NCBI RefSeq assembly: GCF_001194135.2
Contig: NC_068984.1
Coordinates: forward strand, 103,288,273 to 103,352,272
Reading direction: 5' to 3'
Length of the DNA: 64,000 nt
Origin: Octopus bimaculoides
Lineage: Eukaryota
The first letter of the stretch is position 1, and each line of letters begins with the position of its first letter. Under the pieces are notes generated by a model. It saw only the letters and a list, made by a program, of their open reading frames with translations, searched no databases and had not been told where the DNA came from. This document shows positions 17,808 to 57,974 of this stretch, piece after piece. A program made the position numbers and the translations under genes.

Positions 17808-19712
17808 CCGTATGTACTCGACTAAAAAACGCCCTCGCTTATAAGACTTACAAAGTTCAAATCAGGAATTTTATCATTGACCCGACTATAAGTCGCGGTG
17901 ACTTTTTTGATGTTGGAGAGCAAAGTTTGATTAGGAATCGCGCCAACATAGTTGTTATTCAGTAACCGAGCTTTCAGTAAGCTGAAGATGACTTATAACA
18001 ACTGTTACCCCATTAAGTCCATGCATTTTAGAAACCGTAGTTTATAATGTAAAATTTTATCCTTGATATCGCTAGTTGACTTGTTTATCATATTGAGACT
18101 TAATTGACTCGATACTTTGCCTTTAATTTTTGATTTATGCCTTTCATTATAAGGACACGTTAGCAGCAACTGACACACAAAATTATGCAGTCGTACGTTC
18201 TGTGATTGGAAAAAAATACAATAAACTGTTTTAAATTGTAAGGAAGTATGTGAAACATTGTGACAAAAATCGGAAGAATAAATTAAGAAAGACTCGAGTG
18301 ATACTAATCATCACTTTCATCCTCACTTTCGCCAAATAACTGGTAAAACTCATTGGTTGTGATGGTCTCGTCGTATACAGCCTGATCTTCGTCTTCATTT
18401 GCCTGATCATTAACTGATGAAGCACTGGGGCTAACATTTCTTGCACAGACGATATCACTATATGTTCACCTTAAAAGGCTTTTTCACCGACACGCCAAGT
18501 GACTAAAGCACAGATGTACATCCACCTGGAATCACAACTTGGTAGGTACGACGCTCCTTGAATCTATTTTTTATGCTGTCGATCAGATGAGCCCTGAACA
18601 TATCCCATACAAGAAGCGACTTTGAATTAAGTATAGCCCCTGGGCGCTTGAACCACACGTCATTTAACCAGTTCGTCAACACGGTTTCATCCACGCACCC
18701 TTTCTCCTGAACACACATCACTTTACCCTTCGGAAACTTCTCTTTCGGGTAAGTGTTCCTTTTGAAAACAACAGCTTGGGTAAGTTTCGTACCGTCAGCC
18801 ATACAAACCAAATTTGTGGTAAAGTGGGCCTTGTCGCTCCTCATAGTTTTTACCTAAATTTAGCGTCGACTGCCCGAGTTCCCACCGTATCGAAAAAAGG
18901 GGTGTCTCGTCCATATGGCCGATTGCTTCCAAGGCAAACTCGTGACACTTTCGTAGGTCTATTACATAATGAAAGAAGGAATCAACTCTGTTGCTCTCTA
19001 CGTCGGCGGATAATTTCTGTGCGATATGAGCCTTCTATCTCAGCGTTAGATTGTGGCGTTTCATAAAACTCGTACACCAGCCAGGGGATGCTTTAAAGTC
19101 GGATATACCATGTTCTTTAGTCACTTGGAGAGCCTGCAATATAATGATGTTTCTCGTGACGACAAATCCATTCGTGCATAGTTCAGTCACCCAGTCTCTC
19201 AAGATAATCTCCATCTCCTCATTAGGATACGTTCCTATCCTAATTTTCTTTAACGATTTGATGTCAACGGATTTCCTTTTCTCCTCTTTCAAATGCCAAT
19301 CCTTGAACATTTTTTCTGAGACCCCAAATTCTCTTTCTGCAACTCGATTCGGATGCGACTTCGCGTATTCAACAACTTTCAGCTTGAAAGTGATATCATA
19401 CGAATTCCTCTTTCTCTTCATATTAACAAATAATATGGCGTCCAATTAAAGAAAGACAGGTACGGTACAAAAATAAACAAGCATTAAAATATATATATAT
19501 ATAAAGAAATATCTAAAGATCAACTTCCGTGCACTTCTCAGCTTCAGAATTAGCGATTCGGGTTTTACCAAGTGTCGGAACTTCAGACATGGCTTGAACC
19601 TAGATAATATCTGAAGATTTTTTTATAGGATGCGCTTATAAGTCGCACCCCCAACTTTAGGTGGAAATTTCAGGATAAAAAAAAAGTGTGGCTTATAACC
19701 AAGTATATACAG
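17808..19712 (-). mobile_element. pogo-family DNA transposon (about 1.9 kb) with TIRs and TA target duplication
   Basis: Left TA|CCGTATGTACTCGACTA, right TATAACCAAGTATATACAG|TA (imperfect TIRs), enclosing a transposase. Confidence 0.85.
18231..19445 (-). pseudogene. POGK-like transposase (Brinker-type HTH, CENP-B HTH, DDE_1), disrupted
   Basis: SYDITFKLKVVEYAK..AEREFGVSEK, LRDWV, FKASPGWCTSFMKRHNLTLR, MDETP, AVVFKR, LLVWDMFRAH, VIPGGCTSVL; in-frame stops and a shortened C-terminus. Confidence 0.85.
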
Positions 19713-21773: not shown

Positions 21774-22477
21774 GGAATAAATAAATAAATAAATAAATGA
21801 AACAAAACACGAAGGGGAACTGAAGGAACCATCTTGATAAAATTATAACGAATTACATTAAAATGATTAAAGCTTAAAGATTAGAGTTTTATATGCTAAA
21901 AAATGATTAAATTAATGCGAACATTCCACCACACACACTCACACACGCACACACGCACACGCACACATACACACATACGCACGCACGCACTCATATACAC
22001 GCGCTCGCGCACAAACACATACATACACACGCGTATTTCATGCTATAAATTGCAAGAAAAGGATTCAATTGATTGGAGACTGAAGGACAGAAGGAAGGAA
22101 GGAAGGAAGGAAGGAAGGAAGGATAGATGGATGGATGGATGGATGGATGGATGGATGGATGGAACGAACGAACGAACGAACGGAATGAAGAAAGCGAAGG
22201 AAGGAAGATACAAAGAGAGAAAAGGAGAAAGAAAGAAAGAAAGTAAGTAAGAAAGAAAGAAAAGGAGAGAGAAATAAAAAAGAACGAAAACAGGAAGGAA
22301 GGGAGAGTGGGGTGGAAGAAAAGAAAGAAGGAGGGAATGAAATGGAAACTGGACATTTTCAAAAGTCAATAGAACCTTTTGAGATAAAGCTGAAATTCTA
22401 GGTTGCGTAACTGAAGTTGATTACAGTTGCATGACAAGGATTTGTGAGAGAATAAATATTCCTTTCTGCTATAGCCA

Positions 22478-22670
22478 TAAGGCCTGAAATTTGTTGGGAA
22501 TGGGACAGTCGATTACATCGACCCCACTGTTTGTTTGGTACTTTTTTTCTCGACTCCGAAAGGATGAAAGGCGAAGTCGACCTCGGTGGAATTTGAACTC
22601 AAAACGTAAAAACAAACGAAATGCCGCTAACCATTTTGTCCGACGTGCTAACGATCCTGCCAGCTCGTTC
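22478..22670 (-). mobile_element. S1 tRNA-like SINE
   Basis: Minus strand shows GAGCTGGCAG.ATCGTTAGCACG, B-box-like GAGTTCAAATTCC, GAGGTCGACTT.GCCTTTCATCCTTTCGG and GTCGATGTAATCGAC. Confidence 0.85.
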
Positions 22671-22689
22671 ACTTTGAGACCATAAATAC

Positions 22690-22890
22690 TGGTTTCAAAT
22701 CTTGGCACAGGACTAACAATTTCGATTACATTGACCTTAGTGCTCAACTGATACTTATTTTACCGACCCCGAAAGGATTAAAGGCAAAGTCGATCTCGGC
22801 TGAATTTGAACTCAGAACGTAAGGGCGGACGAAATGCAGCAAAGCATTTTGCCCGGCCTGCTAACGATTCAGCCAACTCACCGCCTTAAG
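22690..22890 (-). mobile_element. S1 tRNA-like SINE, tandem to the previous copy
   Basis: Same motifs; a further head-only remnant lies at about 22905-22935. Confidence 0.85.
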
Positions 22891-23643
22891 TATTTTTCCC
22901 GTTAGACTAACAATTCTGCCAGCTGACCGCCTTAATATTAACAGTAAATTTAGCAACAATGGTGGTAACAAAGAATTAGCTAATATGTTTTAGAATCAAG
23001 TACAGGAAGAAAAAGAAGAAGAAGAAGAAGAAGAGGAAGGAGAAGAAGAATAAGTTTGTAATTTTTATAGATATAGGTTCGAGTCTCACGAAAAGCCTTC
23101 AACTTTTTCTGTCCCAAAGGGTTTTCTAACCAAATATTTACATGCTATTATTTATAGCATTATCTACTTCGATTTCTAGTTAAAAATGAATTATTTCACG
23201 TTTTCTCGAAATTTCTAAATTTCTATGACGTAAACAACTTGCAAGAGCAACTGGTAAGAGCAAGTTTTCTAAAATGAATAGAGAATTTCGAAAGATTACT
23301 TTGATCCAGTGTATACTGGAGATGAGGGTACAAATCCCACCAGCAGCCTTTGACTTTTTCTATCCAAAGTGGTTTTTAATCCATTATTATTTATATTATA
23401 GGAGAGTATTGTAGTTCGCTTGAAGCATTATAATTTATAGCTTTATGTATTTCGTGTTTTGCAGTTAAAAACAATTAGAATAACAAGACTATCTATACAT
23501 GTTCTTACTCCGTTCTTTCTATTCTAACAATTGAGGCGTTAGAATAGAAACAAGCTTGGATTTTTGTGGTGGCATAAGACACACATATAGAACTTCATTT
23601 TAAATATATATATAAGTTATAAATATTGCCACTATTTCCTATT

Positions 23644-29879: not shown

Positions 29880-30167
29880 AAAGCAGTACTGACAAGATAT
29901 CATCTCACAGGATCATATCTTTTTGACAATCTATGATGTCATATTTGAATGGTTTGTTCTCACTTGTGAGAACTAAAGTGATGTGCCAAGACTTGATTAG
30001 GTGCTGATTAGCAGCTACCATTGGTTTTGGAACTTTTGGATAATTGTGATGGTTTGAAAATATACCACCCACAATATGAGATACCATCAAAGACTCTCTG
30101 GTAGTTCGACAATACTACAGTTAAGTTCTTGTGGTTCTTTACTATTTTTGTTCATTAATTCGAAGCT

Positions 30168-30345
30168 GTTAGGCGGTGAGCTGACACAATCGATAGTCTT
30201 TAAGTTCTGAGTCCCAAATCCACCGAGCTCTACTTTGCCTTTCATCTTTTCGAAGTCGATAAGCTAAGGACTAGTTGATCACTGGGATCGACTTACACAC
30301 TCTCCCGAAATTGCTGGCTTTGAGCCAAAATTTGAAACCATTACT
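30168..30345 (+). mobile_element. S1 SINE, internally deleted
   Basis: GGCGGTGAGCTG...AATCG, CTTTGCCTTTCATC.TTTCG, tail CCAAAATTTGAAACCATTA. Confidence 0.75.
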
Positions 30346-30649
30346 TAGAAGCTGCTCTCTGCTTCCCACATTCCCGTAGATGCTATAATGTTATTGGTGG
30401 TATCATGATCCTGCAAACACAAATTCAGACGTTCGGTGTACATCTTATTTATGTTGCTCTGCCTGAATGTTCGTTGATAGCTTTTTAGTTTGAGTGGTTT
30501 GACTATTTTGGGGAATTAAAAGGACAGGGAGAGCTGACAACCAGTTGAGTACGTTTAACGTACCTTTGTATATATGTATGTGTTTGTGTATGAATGCATA
30601 TATGTGTGTGTGCGTGTATCTATGTATGTATATACGTTTGATTGTATGT

Positions 30650-34652: not shown

Positions 34653-36769
34653 TTAATGTATAGAACTATGCAGTGGAGAAGCGTAGTAGTAGCTGCATAA
34701 GAGACAGAAAGAAAAATTAGTCTGTTTCTGAATGAGTGATTGTAGTGTGCTGCCAGTTGACTGAGTCTGAAGGGGAGTAAGTTCTAATGTCGCCATTTCC
34801 AAATTTGGTTCAAGTATCAGTTCTTGGAGGTAGTCTATGTATGGCGTCAGTCATTTAAGAAATGTAGTAGTATTGGAAGTTAAGGAGAAAAGAAATGTAG
34901 TATGGTCTCTATAAGAATACATGAAGTAATGCAGGTGGAGCAAATTACGGGGAAGAAGCGCTAAGCAGTGATGTATATAACTATAAGATTATTTCCAGTT
35001 CAAATATACTTAGGACATATTCGAACTCGTAAGAAGGCTATTCACTGCGTTTTGTCATGGAGAACATTTCTCACTATAGATAAATGGTGTAAGTACACCT
35101 AAAATCAGCTCGCAGTGTCACCTATCCAGACTGTGAGGTGTAAGCACTTCGGAATGGTTATCTGGTAGTATAAAATCGATACGGGCTTGAATGTGCCACA
35201 AGCATATTTGAACTTGTATTTATAGATGGAACAGTTTAGGAAAGATAACCAATTCTTAAATCATTCTAGTATCGATAAAATAAGAGTCCTTTGGACTCGC
35301 AAATCATTAATGGAGATCCAAGTTCTGGCCAACAACCGCGACTGATGGATAAAATTAGTGTACGATTTGTCGCCACGGTGCTCTTACGATTCCATCAGTA
35401 GTCGAAGGCCCAAGGGTTGGAAAGCCGTGATAACGCACTCTACGAAAGACATAGATGTGTGATTTATCCAGAAAGTTCTAATACCAGATGCAGTAGAAGG
35501 ATTAGCTGATGTTAACAGTAACAACATTGCTTACACTGGAGTTCTATGAAAGGTGATTACAACCACTGGAGAATGACGTAGCAAAGCAAATTTCCAGTTG
35601 ATTTAGCATTACGAAACCTGTATTAGTGGACATTTAGAAAGGAAACAGGCTGACGACAATTAAGTATATGGTTATTTGCGAATGTTTTCATCATATCTGA
35701 GATGTTTAAATGAGGATAAGACAATAGTTGCTTAGATCAAAATTTTGTTGAGAAGAGATTTTGTGTGAGCGTTACATGAAGTTTAAAGCAAGCAGCCGAG
35801 GCAGAGGTTATATTCATTTAATCGAGATCTTCTTGGCAATAGACTAGGCTTCTCGCTACAATTTGGAAAGTAAAACAATTTTCCAGCTGTACGATACATG
35901 AAAGCATTTTTATGTCTTCTCTTAATCATCTTTCAAGAGTTATTGTTGATGCTGTTATTGTTACAGCTACTGTTGATGATGATGATGATGATCATGATGC
36001 AGCTGTTGTTATTGTTGTTTTTATTTTACCTCTAGATCAGGCTTTTTCGAGCAAATTTACGATGGAAGTCATTCCGCTGTTTATCCAGGCAGAGAAATAT
36101 CAAGACCGTACGAATATTTTGTCGACAATGAATTCGTAAAAACTCACTTCCTAATACATTACTAACATTAAAAAAAAAAAAGAAGTTGAAATTCTATTAT
36201 TATGCTAAAAGGTAACTCAATGAAAATAATAAAGAATATCCAACAAGTTGTGAAGGTAAAGTGAACTATAAAATGGTGGCATTCGATTTATTTTACAACA
36301 TTTTTTTGTATCGAGCATAGATTCCACCGTTGAATTGCTGCTATTCAACGTATGTAGTTTAGAATTGACATTGATGGAAAACCTGATCTACAGGATGAAT
36401 CAAAGAATTAAATAAACAGGGAGAATAAATGAAGTGATAAAGCATTCCAGAATAATAAAACCTGATAAAACATGGCATTAATCAGTGAATAGAGAGCAAT
36501 TTCAAACTGACATTCACTATAATACATGATAAGCAGTTGGAAGCAAGGGAAACAGATATATGTGCAATAGGTTTCCATGTCATTGTTGGCATATGTACAA
36601 CAGAATGGGAAGCAAAATCTACTCAGAAAGAGAGGGGGAGAGAATGTAGAAATAATGTTCAGGGCTTTCATCTTCATGTCACTATTACAGTATTTTAATC
36701 AATTTAAATTTATTAGTTAAACGTACACGGTATCTTCAGAAACAAAAATACAGGTGTAATTAATGAAAA

Positions 36770-36925
36770 ATTACGGTATAATTAATGGTATGTTTAATGG
36801 TGTAATTAATTGTATAATTGATATTATAATTAATGGTATAATCAATAATATAATTAATGGTATACTTAATGGTGTAGTTAATGGTAAATTTAATGGCAAA
36901 ATCAGTAATATAATTAACGGTAAAA
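36770..36925. repeat. Degenerate 12-bp minisatellite (AATTAATGGTAT), about 13 units
   Basis: Visible periodicity; source of the IING-repeat pseudo-ORF. Confidence 0.85.
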
Positions 36926-36949
36926 TGCTAAAGATTTGGAAGGCGCAGA

Positions 36950-37170
36950 AATATTGGTATCAAATTTTGACACAAGGCCAGCAATTCTGGGGGAGGGAGT
37001 AAGTCGATTACATCGACCCCAGTGATCAACTGGTACTTATTTTATCGACCCCTAAAGGATGAAAGGTAAAACTGGTCCCGGCGTCATTTGAACTCAGAAC
37101 GTAAAATCGGAAGAAATGCTGCTAAGTATTTTATCCGGCGCGGTAACGATCCTATCTGCTTCCCACCTTA
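36950..37170 (-). mobile_element. S1 SINE
   Basis: Full S1 motif set. Confidence 0.85.
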
Positions 37171-37500
37171 ACGAAGAAAGAACTGTTATGCTAACAATTG
37201 AATTATTATAACAAAAAAATAATCAAATAAAATTATTAAGTATTGCAACTAAGAGGAGTGATATATTATTCTTTACTGTAAAATATATTTTTAGCCGGAT
37301 AAGTGTAATCCATCACCAGATTTAACCCCATCATCAGTTATAGTATTGCCTTGACCAATACTATATCGGACCAAGTTCCTTTTTAAGAAAAACGTCATCC
37401 CTAATGTTCTCCCTCTACACTACAGGCAACTGGACCCTTCCTACCATCACTAAACCGCAATAAAAAAGTTATTGACAATTGGCCTTTCCTCTTAACAGTA

Positions 37501-39052
37501 AAGCTATCTTAATATAATTCTAATTTTGAGGCGTGATGGGTGGATCGATAATATCGACTCTAGTACTTCACTGGTATTTTATTTTATCTACTCGGAAAGG
37601 ATAGAAGGCAAAGCCAACCTCAGTGGATATTGAACTCAGAACGTAAAGAGCCGGAAGAAATTCCACAAAACATTTTGTCCGACGTGCTTACAATTCTGCT
37701 AGCTTATCGCTTTAAAAGCTATCTTAATATACTGTTTTCTTCTAAAGGCACACGTCCTGAAATTTGGGAAGAAGGGACTAGTCGATTACATCGATTGCAG
37801 TACTCAGCTGTCGACTTCGGCAATTTGAATCATAATAAAAACTGGATGAAATGTTGCCAAGCGTTTTGTCCAGCGTGCTAAAGATTCTACCAGTTGATCA
37901 CCTTCAGGTTCCTAATTTTAGCGCAAGGCCAGCAATTTTAGGAAAGAGCAATTTTAGTCGATTACATCAACCCAGAACTTAATTATTTTATCGATCACGA
38001 GAGGATGAAAGGCAAAGACGTCCTTGGCGCCATTTGAACTCAGAACGTAACGTAATGAAAGAGATACTGGTAAGAATTGTTGTCCAGCAAACTGACGATT
38101 CTGTCAGTCCCCCGCCTTAAGCTATCTTAATACAATCGTTTCAAATGTTGGTACAAGGGCAGCAATTTGGTGGGGTCAGGTTAGTTGATGTCATCGACCC
38201 CAGTGTTCAACTGGTACTTATTTTGTTAGTCCCAAAAAGATGAACGACAAAGTCGATCTCAGTGGAATTTGAACTCAGAGCGTAAAGATGAATGAAATGC
38301 CGCCAAGCATATTGTCCAGTGCGCTAACGATTCTGCCATTTGCTGCCTTATAAGGCTATCTTAATATAATTGTTTCAAATTTTGACACAAGGCCAGCAGT
38401 TTTGGAGGAGGGAGTAAATCGATTGCATTGACTCCAGTATTCAAGTGGTACCTATTTTATCAACCCCGAAAGGATGAAATGTAAAGTCGACCTCAGCAGG
38501 TTTTGAATTCAGAACATAAAGACGGACGAAATGCCACTAAACATTTTGCCCAGTGTGCTAAAAATTCTGCCAGCCTGCCGCTTTTAACTATAGGCACAAG
38601 GCCCGAAATTTGAGGGGAAGGAGCTAGTCGATTACATCGACCACAGTGCTCGAATGGTACTTATTTTATTGATCTCAAAAGGGTGAAAGGCAAAGTCAAC
38701 CGCGGTGGAATTTGAACTCAAAACGTAAAAACGGACGAAATGCCGCAATGCATTTTGTCCAGCGTAGTAACTATTATTCTCCCACACGCAGTCTTATAAG
38801 GCTTTCTTAATATAATGATTTCAGATGAGGCACAAGGCCATCAATTTCGGGGGAGAAGGTATGTCGATCGCATTGACCCCAGTACTCAACTGGTATTTAT
38901 TTTATCAACTCCGAAAAGTTGAAAGGCAAAGTCGACCTCGGTGAAATTTGAACTCAGAGCACAAAGACAGGCGTAATGCCGCTAAGTATTTTGTCCAGCG
39001 CGCTAAGTATCATTCTGCCACTCGCTCCCTTATAAGGCTATCTCAATATAAT
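37501..39052 (-). mobile_element. Array of seven S1 SINE copies punctuated by six copies of AA(G)GCTATCTTAATATAAT
   Basis: Motif starts at 37501, 37716, 38119, 38352, 38798 and 39034; one or two SINE bodies lie in each interval. Confidence 0.9.
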
Positions 39053-39591
39053 AAAAACTAATAATAGCTATTTTTATGCTTATATATTCCCCCCTTTTCT
39101 CTTAACACCGAGAAAATTTTATATTTTTTCTAAACTAAATATGTTACATTCAGCAGAAAATATTCCTTTCCATTCATAAAAAAGAGATAACATGCAACTG
39201 TTATATCTTTTTTTATTGTCAGCAGTAACTTGATAAATATAACGTTGCACATTGTAACTAACGCCATTGTTGATATCAGAGAAAATATAACCGCGGTTCT
39301 AGCATTAATAATAAAGGTTAGAAATTCAATAGGGAATTATCGAAAACAATATTCACCATATTATCAATGCGTGGCAATAACCATTAATTACTTCTGTTAC
39401 AAAATACAAAATACAAAATAATAGAAACAACAAATTTTATACAAAACCTTGCCAATATATTAAATGCATCGTATTGACCACAGACCTGTCCGCTTAGTTG
39501 CGACAACTGAAATCTGGAGTTGGAGAGCAAATCTACTGAAATTGCAATTATTGTACAAAATTTATTATTTATTTTCAAATGTATAATGCTT

Positions 39592-39760
39592 TAGAAGGCA
39601 ACGAGCTGGCAGAATCGTTAGCACGCTGGACAAAAATTCTTAGCGGCTCTTCATCCGGCTCTTTACGTTCTGAGTTCAAATCCGTTCGAGATCAACAAAA
39701 TAAAGTACCATCCAAATATTAGAGTAGATGTAATCAACTTAGCCCCTCCCTTCAAAATTA
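39592..39760 (+). mobile_element. S1 SINE, internally deleted
   Basis: GGCAACGAGCTGGCAGAATCGTTAGCACGC...GTTCTGAGTTCAAATCC. Confidence 0.8.
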
Positions 39761-39844
39761 CTTACATTGAACCCTGTAACGGACCGGTGTTCTATTCTGA
39801 GGGAATGGTGTGATCTCGGTCTTTCATACGCCATGGAAATACAG

Positions 39845-40164: not shown

Positions 40165-40725
40165 NNNNNNNNNNNNNNNNNNNNNNNNNNNNNNNNNNNN
40201 NNNNNNNNNNNNNNNNNNNNNNNNNNNNNNNNNNNNNNNNNNNNNNNNNNNNNNNNNNNNNNNNNNNNNNNNNNNNNNNNNNNNNNNNNNNNNNNNNNNN
40301 NNNNNNNNNNNNNNNNNNNNNNNNNNNNNNNNNNNNNNNNNNNNNNNNNNNNNNNNNNNNNNNNNNNNNNNNNNNNNNNNNNNNNNNNNNNNNNNNNNNN
40401 NNNNNNNNNNNNNNNNNNNNNNNNNNNNNNNNNNNNNNNNNNNNNNNNNNNNNNNNNNNNNNNNNNNNNNNNNNNNNNNNNNNNNNNNNNNNNNNNNNNN
40501 NNNNNNNNNNNNNNNNNNNNNNNNNNNNNNNNNNNNNNNNNNNNNNNNNNNNNNNNNNNNNNNNNNNNNNNNNNNNNNNNNNNNNNNNNNNNNNNNNNNN
40601 NNNNNNNNNNNNNNNNNNNNNNNNNNNNNNNNNNNNNNNNNNNNNNNNNNNNNNNNNNNNNNNNNNNNNNNNNNNNNNNNNNNNNNNNNNNNNNNNNNNN
40701 NNNNNNNNNNNNNNNNNNNNNNNNN

Positions 40726-40822
40726 GAAGAAGAAGAAGAAGAAGAAGAAGAAGAAGAAGAAGAAGAAGAAGAAGAAGAAGAAGAAGAAGAAGAAGAAGAA
40801 GAAGAAGAAGAAGAAGAAGAAA
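40726..40822. repeat. (GAA)n microsatellite at a gap edge
   Basis: Perfect run. Confidence 0.95.
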
Positions 40823-40919
40823 AAGAGCAGGAGGGGAATGAGGAGGTGGAAGAAGGAGGGAACAGTAGCAACAGAAATAGTTACAGTAGCAGGAGGTGAC
40901 AAATTCCGAAGAGTTCGCC

Positions 40920-41400: not shown

Positions 41401-41609
41401 AGGTAAGGTCGTAATTTTCACGCGAAAAGGAGATGTGATGCGACTGATGTTAGGTTTACTAACACCAAGGACCAATAATTCGAGAGAGCGAGAGAGAGAG
41501 AGATAAAAGCAAAGAAATAAGCAAATAAAAAGGAAGAATGGATCCGTGCTTAATAGGTATTTTATTTATCGACCCCGAAAGTATAAAAGTTAAAGTTGAC
41601 TTCTGCATA

Positions 41610-47245: not shown

Positions 47246-47504
47246 CCCTTGTATCCTTAACTGCTGCTCCAACTTACACAAACACACATCTAAATATATG
47301 TTAAACGGTAAATATGTATTTTTGTGTGTACGTGTCTGTATGTGTGTGTAATACATGTTTGTATGTATGTATGTATGTATGTATGTATGTATGTATGAAA
47401 AGAACAGAATCAAACTGAAATTTGCTTCTAGACCGGGAATCATTCTCAGATCCAGAACACAGAACTGCTGTTGTCGGCAGTGAATTAAGCAGGTATAATA
47501 TTCT

Positions 47505-47720
47505 TTTCTACTCAAGGAACAAGGCCCGAAATTTTTGGGGAAAGGGGGCCAGTCGATTAGATCGACTCCTATACACAACTGGTACTTAATTTATCGACCC
47601 CGAAAGGTATGAAAGGCAAAGTCGACCTCGGTGGAATTTGAATTCAGAATGTAAAGACATACGAAATACCGCTGGGCATTTCGCCCGGCGTGATAACGAT
47701 TCTGCCAGTTCGCCGCCTTA
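47505..47720 (-). mobile_element. S1 SINE, AAGGCCCGAAATTT tail subtype
   Basis: Full motif set ending GTTCGCCGCCTTAA on the plus strand. Confidence 0.85.
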
Positions 47721-47744
47721 AGTAGGTATAATATTGACATAGAC

Positions 47745-50559: not shown

Positions 50560-51919
50560 GGGGAAAGAGAGAGAGGAGAAAGAGAGAGAGGAGAAAGAGA
50601 GAGATAGTAAGAGAGAGATAGTAAGAGAGAGATGGGTCTCATGTTTGTAATGTCTCACCACCCTGACATGACGTTTACCAAAGTATATTAATTTGTTTTG
50701 GATTTTTTTAATATATATAAGCTGATCCTATTTCGATTTTTAGTTTCATTAATAGCCAGGTTTGTTTTGATTGTTTTTATTTAAACTTAGTATTATTAAT
50801 ATGTATATAGATTCTGGCCTATCATACGTTACGACTAACATGTCCTCCAACATAGGCTATAGATATCGAAAATTTAATTTCCGCCTTTGATGATAATGAA
50901 TCAATTGTCAATTCTATGATTCGCCATCACAGACTATAAATCAGATTTAGTTCGATCTATCTTTATTCGGCTTGTACATTCATCATTGATTACTTTTAAC
51001 TTTGTGAAGACTTCTCCAAAGACAAGAAAAATATAGTTCTTGATTGTGATAGATTTACGTCTAGGAACAATCACTTCTACGGTGGTTGGATATTTCCCCT
51101 ACGTTATCCTTCTATTCTTATTCCACCATGTAAGTTGCCGATGTTTATACTTCAGAATGGATCTATTTTTGTAATTTCCAAAAAGTTCTAATTCTAGTAA
51201 ACGACTTTCTATAGAGAGAGCAAATGACTACTTTCCCAGTTAGCATCGTCAGTGTGTTTCGAGACGCAATATTTAATATATGGCTTAGAATTTAAATTAT
51301 TTCGCCCTCTATTAAAGCGGGATTTTATTTTAAAATGTGTCAACTAATACAAAAGTTCCTTGAATGAATACTTTGAATATGAATTGGGAAATGGTTTCCT
51401 GAAAAACAGATAATTGTGAGTCTGGAAAGTTAATTAATTATCTTATATGAGACATATTTATTTTTCGCCTTCTATACATTTAAGAAACTCGATCGACATG
51501 AAATCTATAGCAATTGTTATAACATAAAATGTTATTAATTATTAATTTAATCAGACTGGTTAACACTATGAGGTACTTTGAAAACGCCATATATTCTATG
51601 GAAAGAATCATGCAAAATTGATAAAATAGAAGACAACTAATTTCTAGAGAATGCTTCTTTAACTTCCCTTCAGTGACGTAATCTATCGTTGGTTCTTACC
51701 ATATTCTGATCTCTAATCATCAGATATTCTAAAGTAGTTCTGTAGCAGTTTGGTGACACTAGAAAAGTCCTTTATATTGCGTTTAATGACAGCATCGATC
51801 AATTCTCTGTGAGAAGACCATAAATAATTTTGCTGCATTTGATTTACAGACCCAACTAACAAATCATCGACCTCCAGACAGCAAGTCAATTATTGATTTG
51901 ACACAATGTCAAATGAGTA

Positions 51920-52090
51920 TTTCGATTACATCGACCCCAGTGCTTAAGTGGTATTTATTTTATCGACCCCAAAAGGATGAAAGACAAAGTCGACCTAGGC
52001 GGAATTTGAACTCAGAGCGTAAAGTCGGAAGAAATACCGCTAATAATTTTTTTCCGGCGCAGTAACGATTCTGCCAGCTCGCCGCCTTAA
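51920..52090 (-). mobile_element. S1 SINE
   Basis: Motif set ending GCCAGCTCGCCGCCTTAA. Confidence 0.85.
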
Positions 52091-52289
52091 GTATAGAGTT
52101 ATATTGACTATTTAACTGACATCGACAGCACAGCGTCAAATTGTCCATTTTAACGACTATAACAGTAATGGTTTTGCTTAATATTGTCACATTATCTAAC
52201 TCACATTGTCTATGCTTCACGGACATTGTCAGATCTATGTCAAATTGATAGTGATAATCCCATTGAGTTACGTCATACCTGGTCAATAT

Positions 52290-55700: not shown

Positions 55701-56477
55701 TAAAACAACTGAAATCCAAACTAAAACTGGAACAGCAACGGATCATGATAAAACGAAGGCCAGAAAAGTCGCTTCATGGCAAATACTGGGTTAAACTAAA
55801 CAGAAAAGAAATAGACAAAGCAAAATCCCAACAATGGCTGAGAAGCTCAGGACTCAAAGCAGAGACTGAAGGATTTTTAACTGCCGCACAACATCAAAAC
55901 CTTCCCACCAGAAATTACCAAAAACATGTAATGAAAAGAAATACAAGTAACTGTAGGATATGTGGAGATGGAGAAGAAACAATAAATCATACTGTCTCTG
56001 GCTGCTCAGTCCTTACTAAGAAGGAATATATTCGTAGACACGGCAGATTTGGGACTTGCATACAGGCCGGATATAGTTGTCAGAGATCACCAAGAAAAGA
56101 AATGCTTTCTAATCGATGTATCAATACTAACAGATGACAATGTGTCTCTAAAAGAAACGGAGACACTTTCAAAATACAAAGACCTGTAAATAGAGGTAAC
56201 TCGAATGTGGAGTCTAAAAACAGAAACAATTCCTATCATAGTAAGCGCATTAGGTATGATGAAAAAAATGTTCAGACAAATACTTAACAAAAACACCAGG
56301 ACTTACAAGTATATATAACATTCAGAAAATAGCATTACAAAGCACTGCACATTAACTGCGTAGAATGCTTTCAATACAGTAAAAATAAGAGCATCACAGC
56401 AAAACATAATACATACCCAAGGCACACATAGCTGCGCTCGGTAGAGCAGTGAAAGCACGTGATGAAAAATAAGACTA

Positions 56478-56556: not shown

Positions 56557-57974
56557 TACAAAACAACAAGATTTCCACACGTTATTATGTCGCTAGGTTT
56601 ATCACGTTCAAATATACAATTTCATACCAGTGAACTAGAAATACTAATACTAATAATAGTATATTGCTTCAACTAAATCACTTACACCTCTTATCTACAA
56701 AGTTATTTGGCCTTGTGCTCGGTCAATATACCTCAGTATTTATCTTAGACTCTTTATGAGATAACTGGTTTCAATATGAGATTATTAAAATCGTTTGCAA
56801 GTTTATTATTTGTTTGAAAGGAAATTTGAAATTCGTCTGGAAACTGACAGTTTTAATTCAGACTGTCTATTTTGGCGTCAGTGAAGCCATAAATTTTAAA
56901 GTGTGAATTTAGATATAGTGATTATAAGTACATTAATTCACTTCAATTTTCATCAATTCCGAAACAAGAAAATAAAAGTAAAATTATGTAAGACGCTTAT
57001 TGCAATGTCGATACTTTCGCTGGAAGCTCCAATTCTGTTTGTATATGCTTCTCTTGAAACTTCGCTTTCTGATGCCTCCTTCCCCGCCTCCTGCTAAATG
57101 TTAAATGATTCATTCATTCACTTTTCTGTTTTCTTATATTTTCTAAATTGTTACGGATCACATATTTTTCTCATTACAAGTTTACTTTTTTACGCCAGTA
57201 AACAGGTAAATATTATGCTTTTAAGATTCTGCCTATTACTCGCATAGACTACAGAATATATATTACGAGCGCGCGCACATACACACACACACATATATAC
57301 ATACATATATANNNNNNNNNNNNNNNNNNNNNNNNNNNNNNNNNNNNNNNNNNNNNNNNNNNNNNNNNNNNNNNNNNNNNNNNNNNNNNNNNNNNNNNNN
57401 NNNNNNNNNNNNNNNNNNNNNNNNNNNNNNNNNNNNNNNNNNNNNNNNNNNNNNNNNNNNNNNNNNNNNNNNNNNNNNNNNNNNNNNNNNNNNNNNNNNN
57501 NNNNNNNNNNNNNNNNNNNNNNNNNNNNNNNNNNNNNNNNNNNNNNNNNNNNNNNNNNNNNNNNNNNNNNNNNNNNNNNNNNNNNNNNNNNNNNNNNNNN
57601 NNNNNNNNNNNNNNNNNNNNNNNNNNNNNNNNNNNNNNNNNNNNNNNNNNNNNNNNNNNNNNNNNNNNNNNNNNNNNNNNNNNNNNNNNNNNNNNNNNNN
57701 NNNNNNNNNNNNNNNNNNNNNNNNNNNNNNNNNNNNNNNNNNNNNNNNNNNNNNNNNNNNNNNNNNNNNNNNNNNNNNNNNNNNNNNNNNNNNNNNNNNN
57801 NNNNNNNNNNNNNNNNNNNNNNNNNNNNNNNNNNNNNNNNNNNNNNNNNNNNNNNNNNNNNNNNNNNNNNNNNNNNNNNNNNNNNNNNNNNNNNNNNNNN
57901 NNNNNNNNNNNNNNNNNNNNNNNNNNNNNNNNNNNNNNNNNNNNNNNNNNNNNNNNNNNNNNNNATATATATAT

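Follow-up and report, generated by a model that had tools for sequence, protein, structure and literature searches.

Seven SINEs are arranged head to tail on the minus strand within 1.55 kb (37499-39052; Table 1) of the window, the whole 64-kb stretch of DNA analysed here. A profile HMM built from the copies, together with BLAST, found exactly seven SINE copies within 37503-39051, all of them on the minus strand. This is the number and the orientation reported in the preliminary description of this DNA. A 16-nt core motif, GCTATCTTAATATAAT, occurs six times with 0-1 mismatch (plus-strand starts 37503, 37718, 38121, 38355, 38801, and 39037). As had been described, the motif is non-SINE sequence and lies at both outer edges and at four inner junctions of the array. 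The spacings of the six copies are 215, 403, 234, 446, and 236; the third had been given as 233, and the other four are unchanged. In the rest of the window, the core is matched only at three mismatches, by unrelated sequences, and shuffled sequences give 1.6 matches at three or fewer mismatches. The flanks of the array are unique within the window.

The repeated unit is longer than the core. It comprises 17-20 nt, and its native form, T20, is ATTATATTAAGATAGC[C/T]TTA on the SINE strand. The unit is 20 nt long at both outer edges and 20, 20, 17, and 19 nt long inside the array. The outermost copies, M6 and M1, match each other over 20 nt (best local match 18/20) and then run into unique flank. 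The repetition at both edges noticed earlier is thus confirmed, with the unit extended to a 17-20-nt sequence that corresponds to the native flank. This motif behaves as a target-site duplication (TSD). On the SINE strand, the native target is preceded by ...AGTTTTT, followed by CTGTTAAG..., and AT-rich. In the order of the SINE strand, the locus consists of the X flank (...TTAGTTTTT), M6, c7, M5, c6, c5, M4, c4, M3, c3, c2, M2, c1, M1, and the Y flank (CTGTTAAGAGG). Two internal SINE-SINE junctions do not have the motif, and therefore the array contains five TSD-bounded units, not seven. The repeat-insert-repeat organization proposed earlier is retained with this correction.

Table 1. Positions of the array components and of other features in the window.
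Feature	Position	Strand	Description
Decayed DNA transposon	18503-19445	-	pogo/Tc5-type, two ORFs
Second, smaller stack	22453-22936	-	head fragment, type-A x22719, 16-nt TSD, type-B x22479, same TSD
SINE copies/fragments outside the array	22453-22680; 22680-22899; 22888-22936; 30160-30355; 36946-37173; 39579-39771; 41544-41606; 47494-47736; 51890-52093		
Minisatellite	36753-36926		12-bp unit GGTATAATTAAT, 14.7 units
Neighbouring SINE	36946-37173	-	type A, same orientation as the array
M1	37499-37518	-	target copy T20 (ATTATATTAAGATAGCTTTA), 3'-outermost; native flank CTGTTAAGAGG follows
c1	37519-37714	-	type A; internal 3'-region deletion, 4-nt loss at 3' end, GC insertion as in solitary x39592
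M2	37715-37733	-	target copy T19 (AGTATATTAAGATAGCTTT)
c2	37734-37906	-	type B; 3' end ...CCTTTAGAAGAAAAC directly on M2; internal deletion of ~45 nt
c3	37907-38119	-	type A; complete 3' end ...TTAGGAACC abuts first base of c2 head (TGAAGG...)
M3	38120-38136	-	target copy T17 (ATTGTATTAAGATAGCT)
c4	38137-38350	-	type A; 1-nt head deletion common to c6 and c7
M4	38351-38370	-	target copy T20, CCT variant (ATTATATTAAGATAGCCTTA)
c5	38371-38587	-	type A; 3' end on M4, head directly on c6 3' end
c6	38588-38796	-	type B; nearest relative is solitary type-B copy 22465-22680
M5	38797-38816	-	target copy T20, CCT variant (ATTATATTAAGAAAGCCTTA)
c7	38817-39032	-	type A; AAT duplication and C-to-A change in head common with c6
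M6	39033-39052	-	target copy T20, CCT variant (ATTATATTGAGATAGCCTTA), 5'-outermost; native flank ...TTAGTTTTT precedes
Inverted SINE	39579-39771	+	internal deletion, GC insertion as in c1
Run of N	40165-40725		
Microsatellite	40726-40860		(GAA)n, ~34 units
zf-RVT domain	55745-56137	+	C-terminal domain of non-LTR retrotransposon
Gap	57312-57964		

Two other identities of the motif were considered and rejected. It is not part of the SINE, as it is missing from all eight other SINE copies or fragments in the window, as had been stated, and adjoins unique, non-SINE flank. It is not a SINE tail either, as it occurs at the 5' outer edge, where no tail exists.

The SINE family is ~200-220 bp long and dispersed, with 14 copies and 2 fragments spread over both strands of 60 kb. 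It may be of a cephalopod (octopus) type. Two 3'-end types are distinguished, in agreement with the two tail subtypes reported before, one of which had been assigned to copies 2 and 6. The type A 3' end is AAATTGCTGG...CCAAAATTTGAAACC, i.e. ...AAATTGCTGGCCTTGTGCCAAAATTTGAAACC, and is seen in c1, c3, c4, c5, and c7 and in the solitary copies x22719, x30196, and x36957. The type B 3' end is AAATTTC[G/A]GG...CCT[A/T]TAGnAGAAA, i.e. ...AAATTTCGGGCCTTGTGCCTATAGnAGAAAAG, and is seen in c2 and c6 and in the solitary copies x22479 and x47515. The two types differ at 10 or more positions in the 3' 45 nt, and both are found as solitary copies as well.

Box-like strings, TGGCAGAATCG and GAGTTCAAATTCC, were recognized in the head by eye only, in comparison with the Pol III A and B boxes. 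ARAGORN found no tRNA in the head, and Rfam gave no match at E<=1. Neither SINE tail has a non-SINE match in the window that could represent the tail of a partner LINE. Exact look-ups of three ORFs from the window returned no record. No protein matched the open frame of the SINE consensus, the SINE core pattern is missing from the metagenome and viral contigs, and no printed match to the SINE sequence strings was found in the literature text searched. Of the 14 CpG sites in the consensus, 5-9 are kept in the array copies versus mostly 8-12 in the solitary copies, and non-CpG divergence is equal. The lower CpG content in the array could mean that the cluster is older or more heavily methylated.

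Some solitary copies have readable TSDs of their own: AATATTATACCT[A/G]CTTAA (17/18) for x47515, ATTA[A/C]TT[C/A]GAAGCT (12/14) for x30196, and A[G/A]TATTTAT[GG/TC]TCTCA (13/16) for x22479. All readable TSDs of the family, including ATTATATT of the array, begin with A(A/T)TA(A/T)(A/T). Judging from these sequences, the common start reflects either a preference for certain targets or microhomology in priming, and it is no tail. The ATT(A)-type tail recorded at 30340 is the start of the TSD of that copy, and so it belongs to the target.

The seven SINEs do not form a single lineage. The neighbor-joining (NJ) tree included 14 copies, the seven of the array and seven others from the window; with an outgroup of this size, the subfamily consensus sequences are crude. 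The array was monophyletic in 0/300 and 0/500 bootstraps, and its five type-A members alone in 0/500. A monophyletic cluster, named in the preliminary description as the sign of tandem duplication, is thus not recovered against the window copies. The type-A clade has 100% support, with c2 and c6 outside. Copy c6 pairs with the solitary type-B copy x22479 at 80-83% bootstrap support, and c4 pairs with c7 at 60-63%. The pairwise distance among c4-c7 is 27.5%, versus 27.1% to the solitary copies; it becomes 33% when c1-c3 are added, and array bodies overall differ by 27-33%. Segment-wise distances gave no clear mosaic signal among the copies.

Given the 10 or more positions that separate types A and B, a single insertion cannot yield all seven copies. 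The type-B 3' end of c2 and the type-A 3' ends of c1, c4, c5, and c7 meet the target at the identical position, which indicates that different elements used the same first-strand nick. The 5' junctions vary (T17, T19, and T20), as expected with variable second-strand nicks. Subfamily membership, polyphyly, and divergence show the independent origin of adjacent elements for the array, but not for each single unit.

The target copies are less diverged than the elements that they separate. The six copies require a minimum of 7 changes in 107 cells (6.5%), versus 12-19.5% in the bodies, and their pairwise divergence is 10.9%, 2-3 times lower than that of the SINE bodies. Such a difference would be produced by bodies that were inserted separately at a target renewed at every insertion. 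The binomial test, which covers just 18-20 nt in each of six copies, gave P = 1.5e-4 when all sites were used, 7.7e-3 when only A/T-consensus sites were, and 0.046 in the most restrictive subset; in the most conservative setting, P is ~0.05-0.12. None of 199 overlapping 18-column windows in the bodies is as conserved as the target. In three solitary insertions, the two TSD copies of each element differ by 12.5% in total (6/48), and the solitary bodies differ by 27%. This comparison implies that, in this family, most differences between bodies were already present before insertion or stem from subfamily structure. On either measure, the array resembles a set of independent insertions of the same era.

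We consider, with a probability of roughly 0.55, that the locus was a retrotransposition hot spot, where one and the same bond of a single target was cut on at least five occasions and the target was regenerated each time. On the SINE strand, the first nick would lie 5' of ATTATATT, and at least five separate events of target-primed reverse transcription (TPRT) would have started from it. The second-strand nick, 17-20 nt downstream, would re-create the target on both sides of each new element. The site would stay available in this way, and one target would become six copies. The inserted RNAs would come from different source genes of one SINE family, belonging to subfamilies A and B. Serial insertion with target regeneration had been proposed before, and it is still the best reading given the polyphyly and the lower TSD divergence, with the modification that two of the junctions may each be a single template-switch event.

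These are the two junctions without a target copy. At the c3-c2 junction, there is neither a spacer nor a target copy. At the c6-c5 junction, the c6 3' end ...GCCTATAG continues into the c5 head TTAAAAGCGG..., with an AAAAG overlap (microhomology). They may be template-switch dimers, formed when the reverse transcriptase, on reaching the 5' end of one SINE RNA, switched to the 3' end of another; five events would then suffice. Alternatively, each may be an additional insertion that started from the same nick, the second cut being blunt for c2 and deleting 8 nt for c5, which would make seven events. Precise deletion of a target copy from the c3-c2 junction was rejected, as it must remove exactly 17-20 nt.

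Passive re-use of a site is unlikely to produce such an array. A target preference of 6-7 nt corresponds to one site per 117-578 nt per strand in the window. With this preference and the local SINE density, the expected number of sites with five or more insertions is 6e-9 to 3e-6 per window, and 3e-4 to 0.14 genome-wide if a 2.7-Gb genome is assumed. These counts are so low that an extra cause for the heat of the site would be needed. It could be either a far higher real specificity or a resident SINE promoting insertion at its own boundary.

The strongest competitor, which we regard as a possible but clearly less probable history, is a mixed one. A few insertions, at least one of type A and two of type B, would have been followed by unequal crossing-over or gene conversion between neighbours, so that some units would be local copies or chimeras. 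Neighbouring units offer ~200 bp of roughly 75% homology plus a target copy for such exchange, and unequal recombination between TSDs was proposed for the TSD1-(SINE-TSD1)n arrays of a bivalve (PMC11481361). The indels in the heads would fit such exchange. Copies c4, c6, and c7 have in common a 1-nt deletion between AAGG and TGGCAG, and c6 and c7 have in common an AAT duplication and a C-to-A change, all of which are missing in the other window copies. The heads with these nested indels, ((c7,c6),c4), are precisely those that lie next to the CCT target variant. The pairing of c4 with c7 and 11 derived substitutions common to c1 and c5 are further points for local exchange. Against it, in no fifth of the element is any pair of array bodies closer than unrelated copies are, and the heads of c6 (type B) and c7 (type A) are only ~74% alike overall despite their common indels. 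The lower divergence of the target copies holds against every pair of bodies, and the direct c3-c2 and c6-c5 junctions are not products of exchange in unit register. The GC insertion in c1 is also present in the solitary inverted copy x39592, which shows that indels can be subfamily markers in this SINE family. The head indels can be markers of an evolving source lineage, traces of local gene conversion or unequal exchange, or the result of a 5' junction templated on the resident head.

It is improbable that the array arose in one concerted episode, in which the LINE endonuclease and reverse transcriptase stayed on the site and took several SINE RNAs in turn. Such an idea was raised for target site triplications (PMC1687206). 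All units would then be of the same age. Heterogeneous bodies with well-kept target copies are consistent with this, the target copies have similar numbers of private changes (0-1 each), and the array contains template-switch-like dimers. However, the C/T variant divides the target copies 3:3 in blocks (M4-M6 versus M1-M3), which needs a mutation between events. In addition, c1-c3 are more decayed than c4-c7, and TSD lengths vary among the units.

A single SINE insertion that was tandemly duplicated, by TSD-mediated unequal recombination or slippage, and then decayed was the main alternative in the preliminary description. TSD-(SINE-TSD)n arrays usually arise in this way (PMC11481361), and the unit period is regular (234-236 bp; TRF detected a period of 234/236 bp with 76-77% identity across the array). 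In its simple, pure form it was nevertheless rejected, and we consider it very improbable: the two 3'-end subfamilies are not interconvertible by point mutation, the array is polyphyletic, the bodies differ by 27-33% against 11% for the target copies, the junction lengths vary, and the target is missing at two junctions. Near-identical or monophyletic units, with the identical truncation and junctions of an unequal-recombination array, are not seen here. Nor does the array resemble a SINE-derived satellite, since it has only five units and no homogenisation, and its motif is found nowhere else in the window. Least probable of all is an assembly artefact in a gap-rich draft: the window (34% G+C) does contain 12 runs of N, but 37174-39578 is free of N, the flanks of the array are unique in the window, and the units are ~25% different with many indels, giving an assembler no reason to collapse or invent them.

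If the hot-spot reading is correct, several features bear on the direction of growth, and they point to opposite ends. The nested head indels, taken in the order c4, c6, and c7, are consistent with the addition of units at the M6 end. So are the heavier decay and large deletions of c1-c3, which are 21-31% diverged from the consensus versus 16-19%, and the slightly better CpG retention in c6 and c7; CpG retention gave no age gradient of practical use over the array. The T20/T20/T20/T17/T19 series, which needs a single C-to-T change, is consistent with addition at the M1 end, and in that case all seven 3' ends would have been joined to the target when inserted. The two polarities are about equally parsimonious. 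A self-renewing target, with the array growing only at the end where the target keeps its native flank, is offered as a tentative extension that we rate below even odds by a wide margin. Its likeness to an array growing at a leader end is formal only. If it were true, the stack would be a dated, ordered record of active SINE subfamilies. It would also mean either that LINE endonuclease or priming is far more site-specific than is assumed for non-site-specific LINE/SINE pairs, or that SINE-guided targeting occurs beside resident copies.

Similar structures are known. Consecutive retroposition at a common site generated target site triplications of snoRNA retroposons with Alu or B2 in mammals (PMC1687206), and an Alu target site triplication is attributed to Lee et al. 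2015 (Gene 561:283), as cited in PMC11481361. As in those cases, an identical TSD flanks and separates adjacent retroposons, the elements differ from each other, and the same nick is re-used. The known triplications comprise two elements and three target copies, whereas the present array has seven SINEs in five TSD-bounded units, with six target copies. In contrast to those cases, the LINE partner here is probably not L1, and the target is AT-rich and not poly(A)-related.

In Felidae, insertion hot spots of CanSINEs also yield tandem arrays, with several independent SINEs in one short target region (PMC4084570). The argument for independence is similar, as a SINE identity of ~82% versus a flank identity of ~96-97% shows it there (PMC4084570). 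The CanSINE TSDs are different but overlapping, and the events occurred across species; here, insertions within one genome used precisely the same TSD. In the clam Scapharca broughtonii, TSD1-(SINE-TSD1)n and TSD1-(SINE)n-TSD1 arrays are ascribed to unequal recombination (PMC11481361). There too, one TSD separates SINE units, and some SINE sub-units have no TSD between them. The clam units are highly similar and truncated at the same point, whereas the units here are polyphyletic, 27-33% diverged, and from two subfamilies. Template switching of the L1 reverse transcriptase yields chimeric retrocopies bracketed by one TSD (mentioned in PMC1687206). The c3-c2 and c6-c5 joins resemble them in being direct 5'-to-3' joins within one TSD pair, one with microhomology; they differ in that both partners are SINEs and that both orders, A-B and B-A, occur.

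The locus is thus an extreme and heterogeneous form of the known target site triplications, hot spots, and TSD arrays, and does not represent a new class of mechanism. If confirmed, it would be among the clearest examples of a LINE/SINE system returning many times to one target site, and would extend target site triplication to a six-fold target. The array is a natural substrate for analyzing where an unstudied invertebrate LINE partner nicks, how widely its TSD lengths vary, and how it switches templates, and it bears on why SINEs cluster. For repeat annotation, it cautions that the TSD-(SINE-TSD)n form does not automatically indicate tandem duplication.

There is one further stack in the window, which is smaller. 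In it, a type-A copy comes after a 49-nt head fragment and a 12-nt spacer, and the 3' end of this copy exactly abuts the 5' TSD copy of a type-B element, AGTATTTATGGTCTCA. The other TSD copy, AATATTTATTCTCTCA, lies after the type-B element. A search upstream of the type-A copy revealed no TSD. As a single further case, this stack hints at a general or genome-wide tendency.

Two more SINEs lie close to the array. The same-orientation type-A copy is 327 bp from M1, which makes nine SINEs in 2.8 kb, and it is located beside the 12-bp minisatellite. The inverted copy is ~530 bp from the array. It has several substitutions in common with c2 and pairs with c2 at 93% in the NJ tree. This copy and the array constitute inverted repeats, which could give dsRNA if they are co-transcribed.

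Other repeats are scattered in the window. The pogo/Tc5-type DNA transposon was recognized by DDE_1 (E 2.6e-13) and HTH_Tnp_Tc5 (E 4.3e-15). The zf-RVT domain (E 5e-6) is the only LINE remnant in the window, and at its 3' end it extends toward the gap at 57312-57964. The search with its ORF found one 612-bp ENA contig, and its sole database relative is a 117-aa ENA protein, P0001. The (GAA)n microsatellite borders the run of N at 40165-40725, and many other microsatellites of the CA, TC, and ATAC types border gaps across the window.
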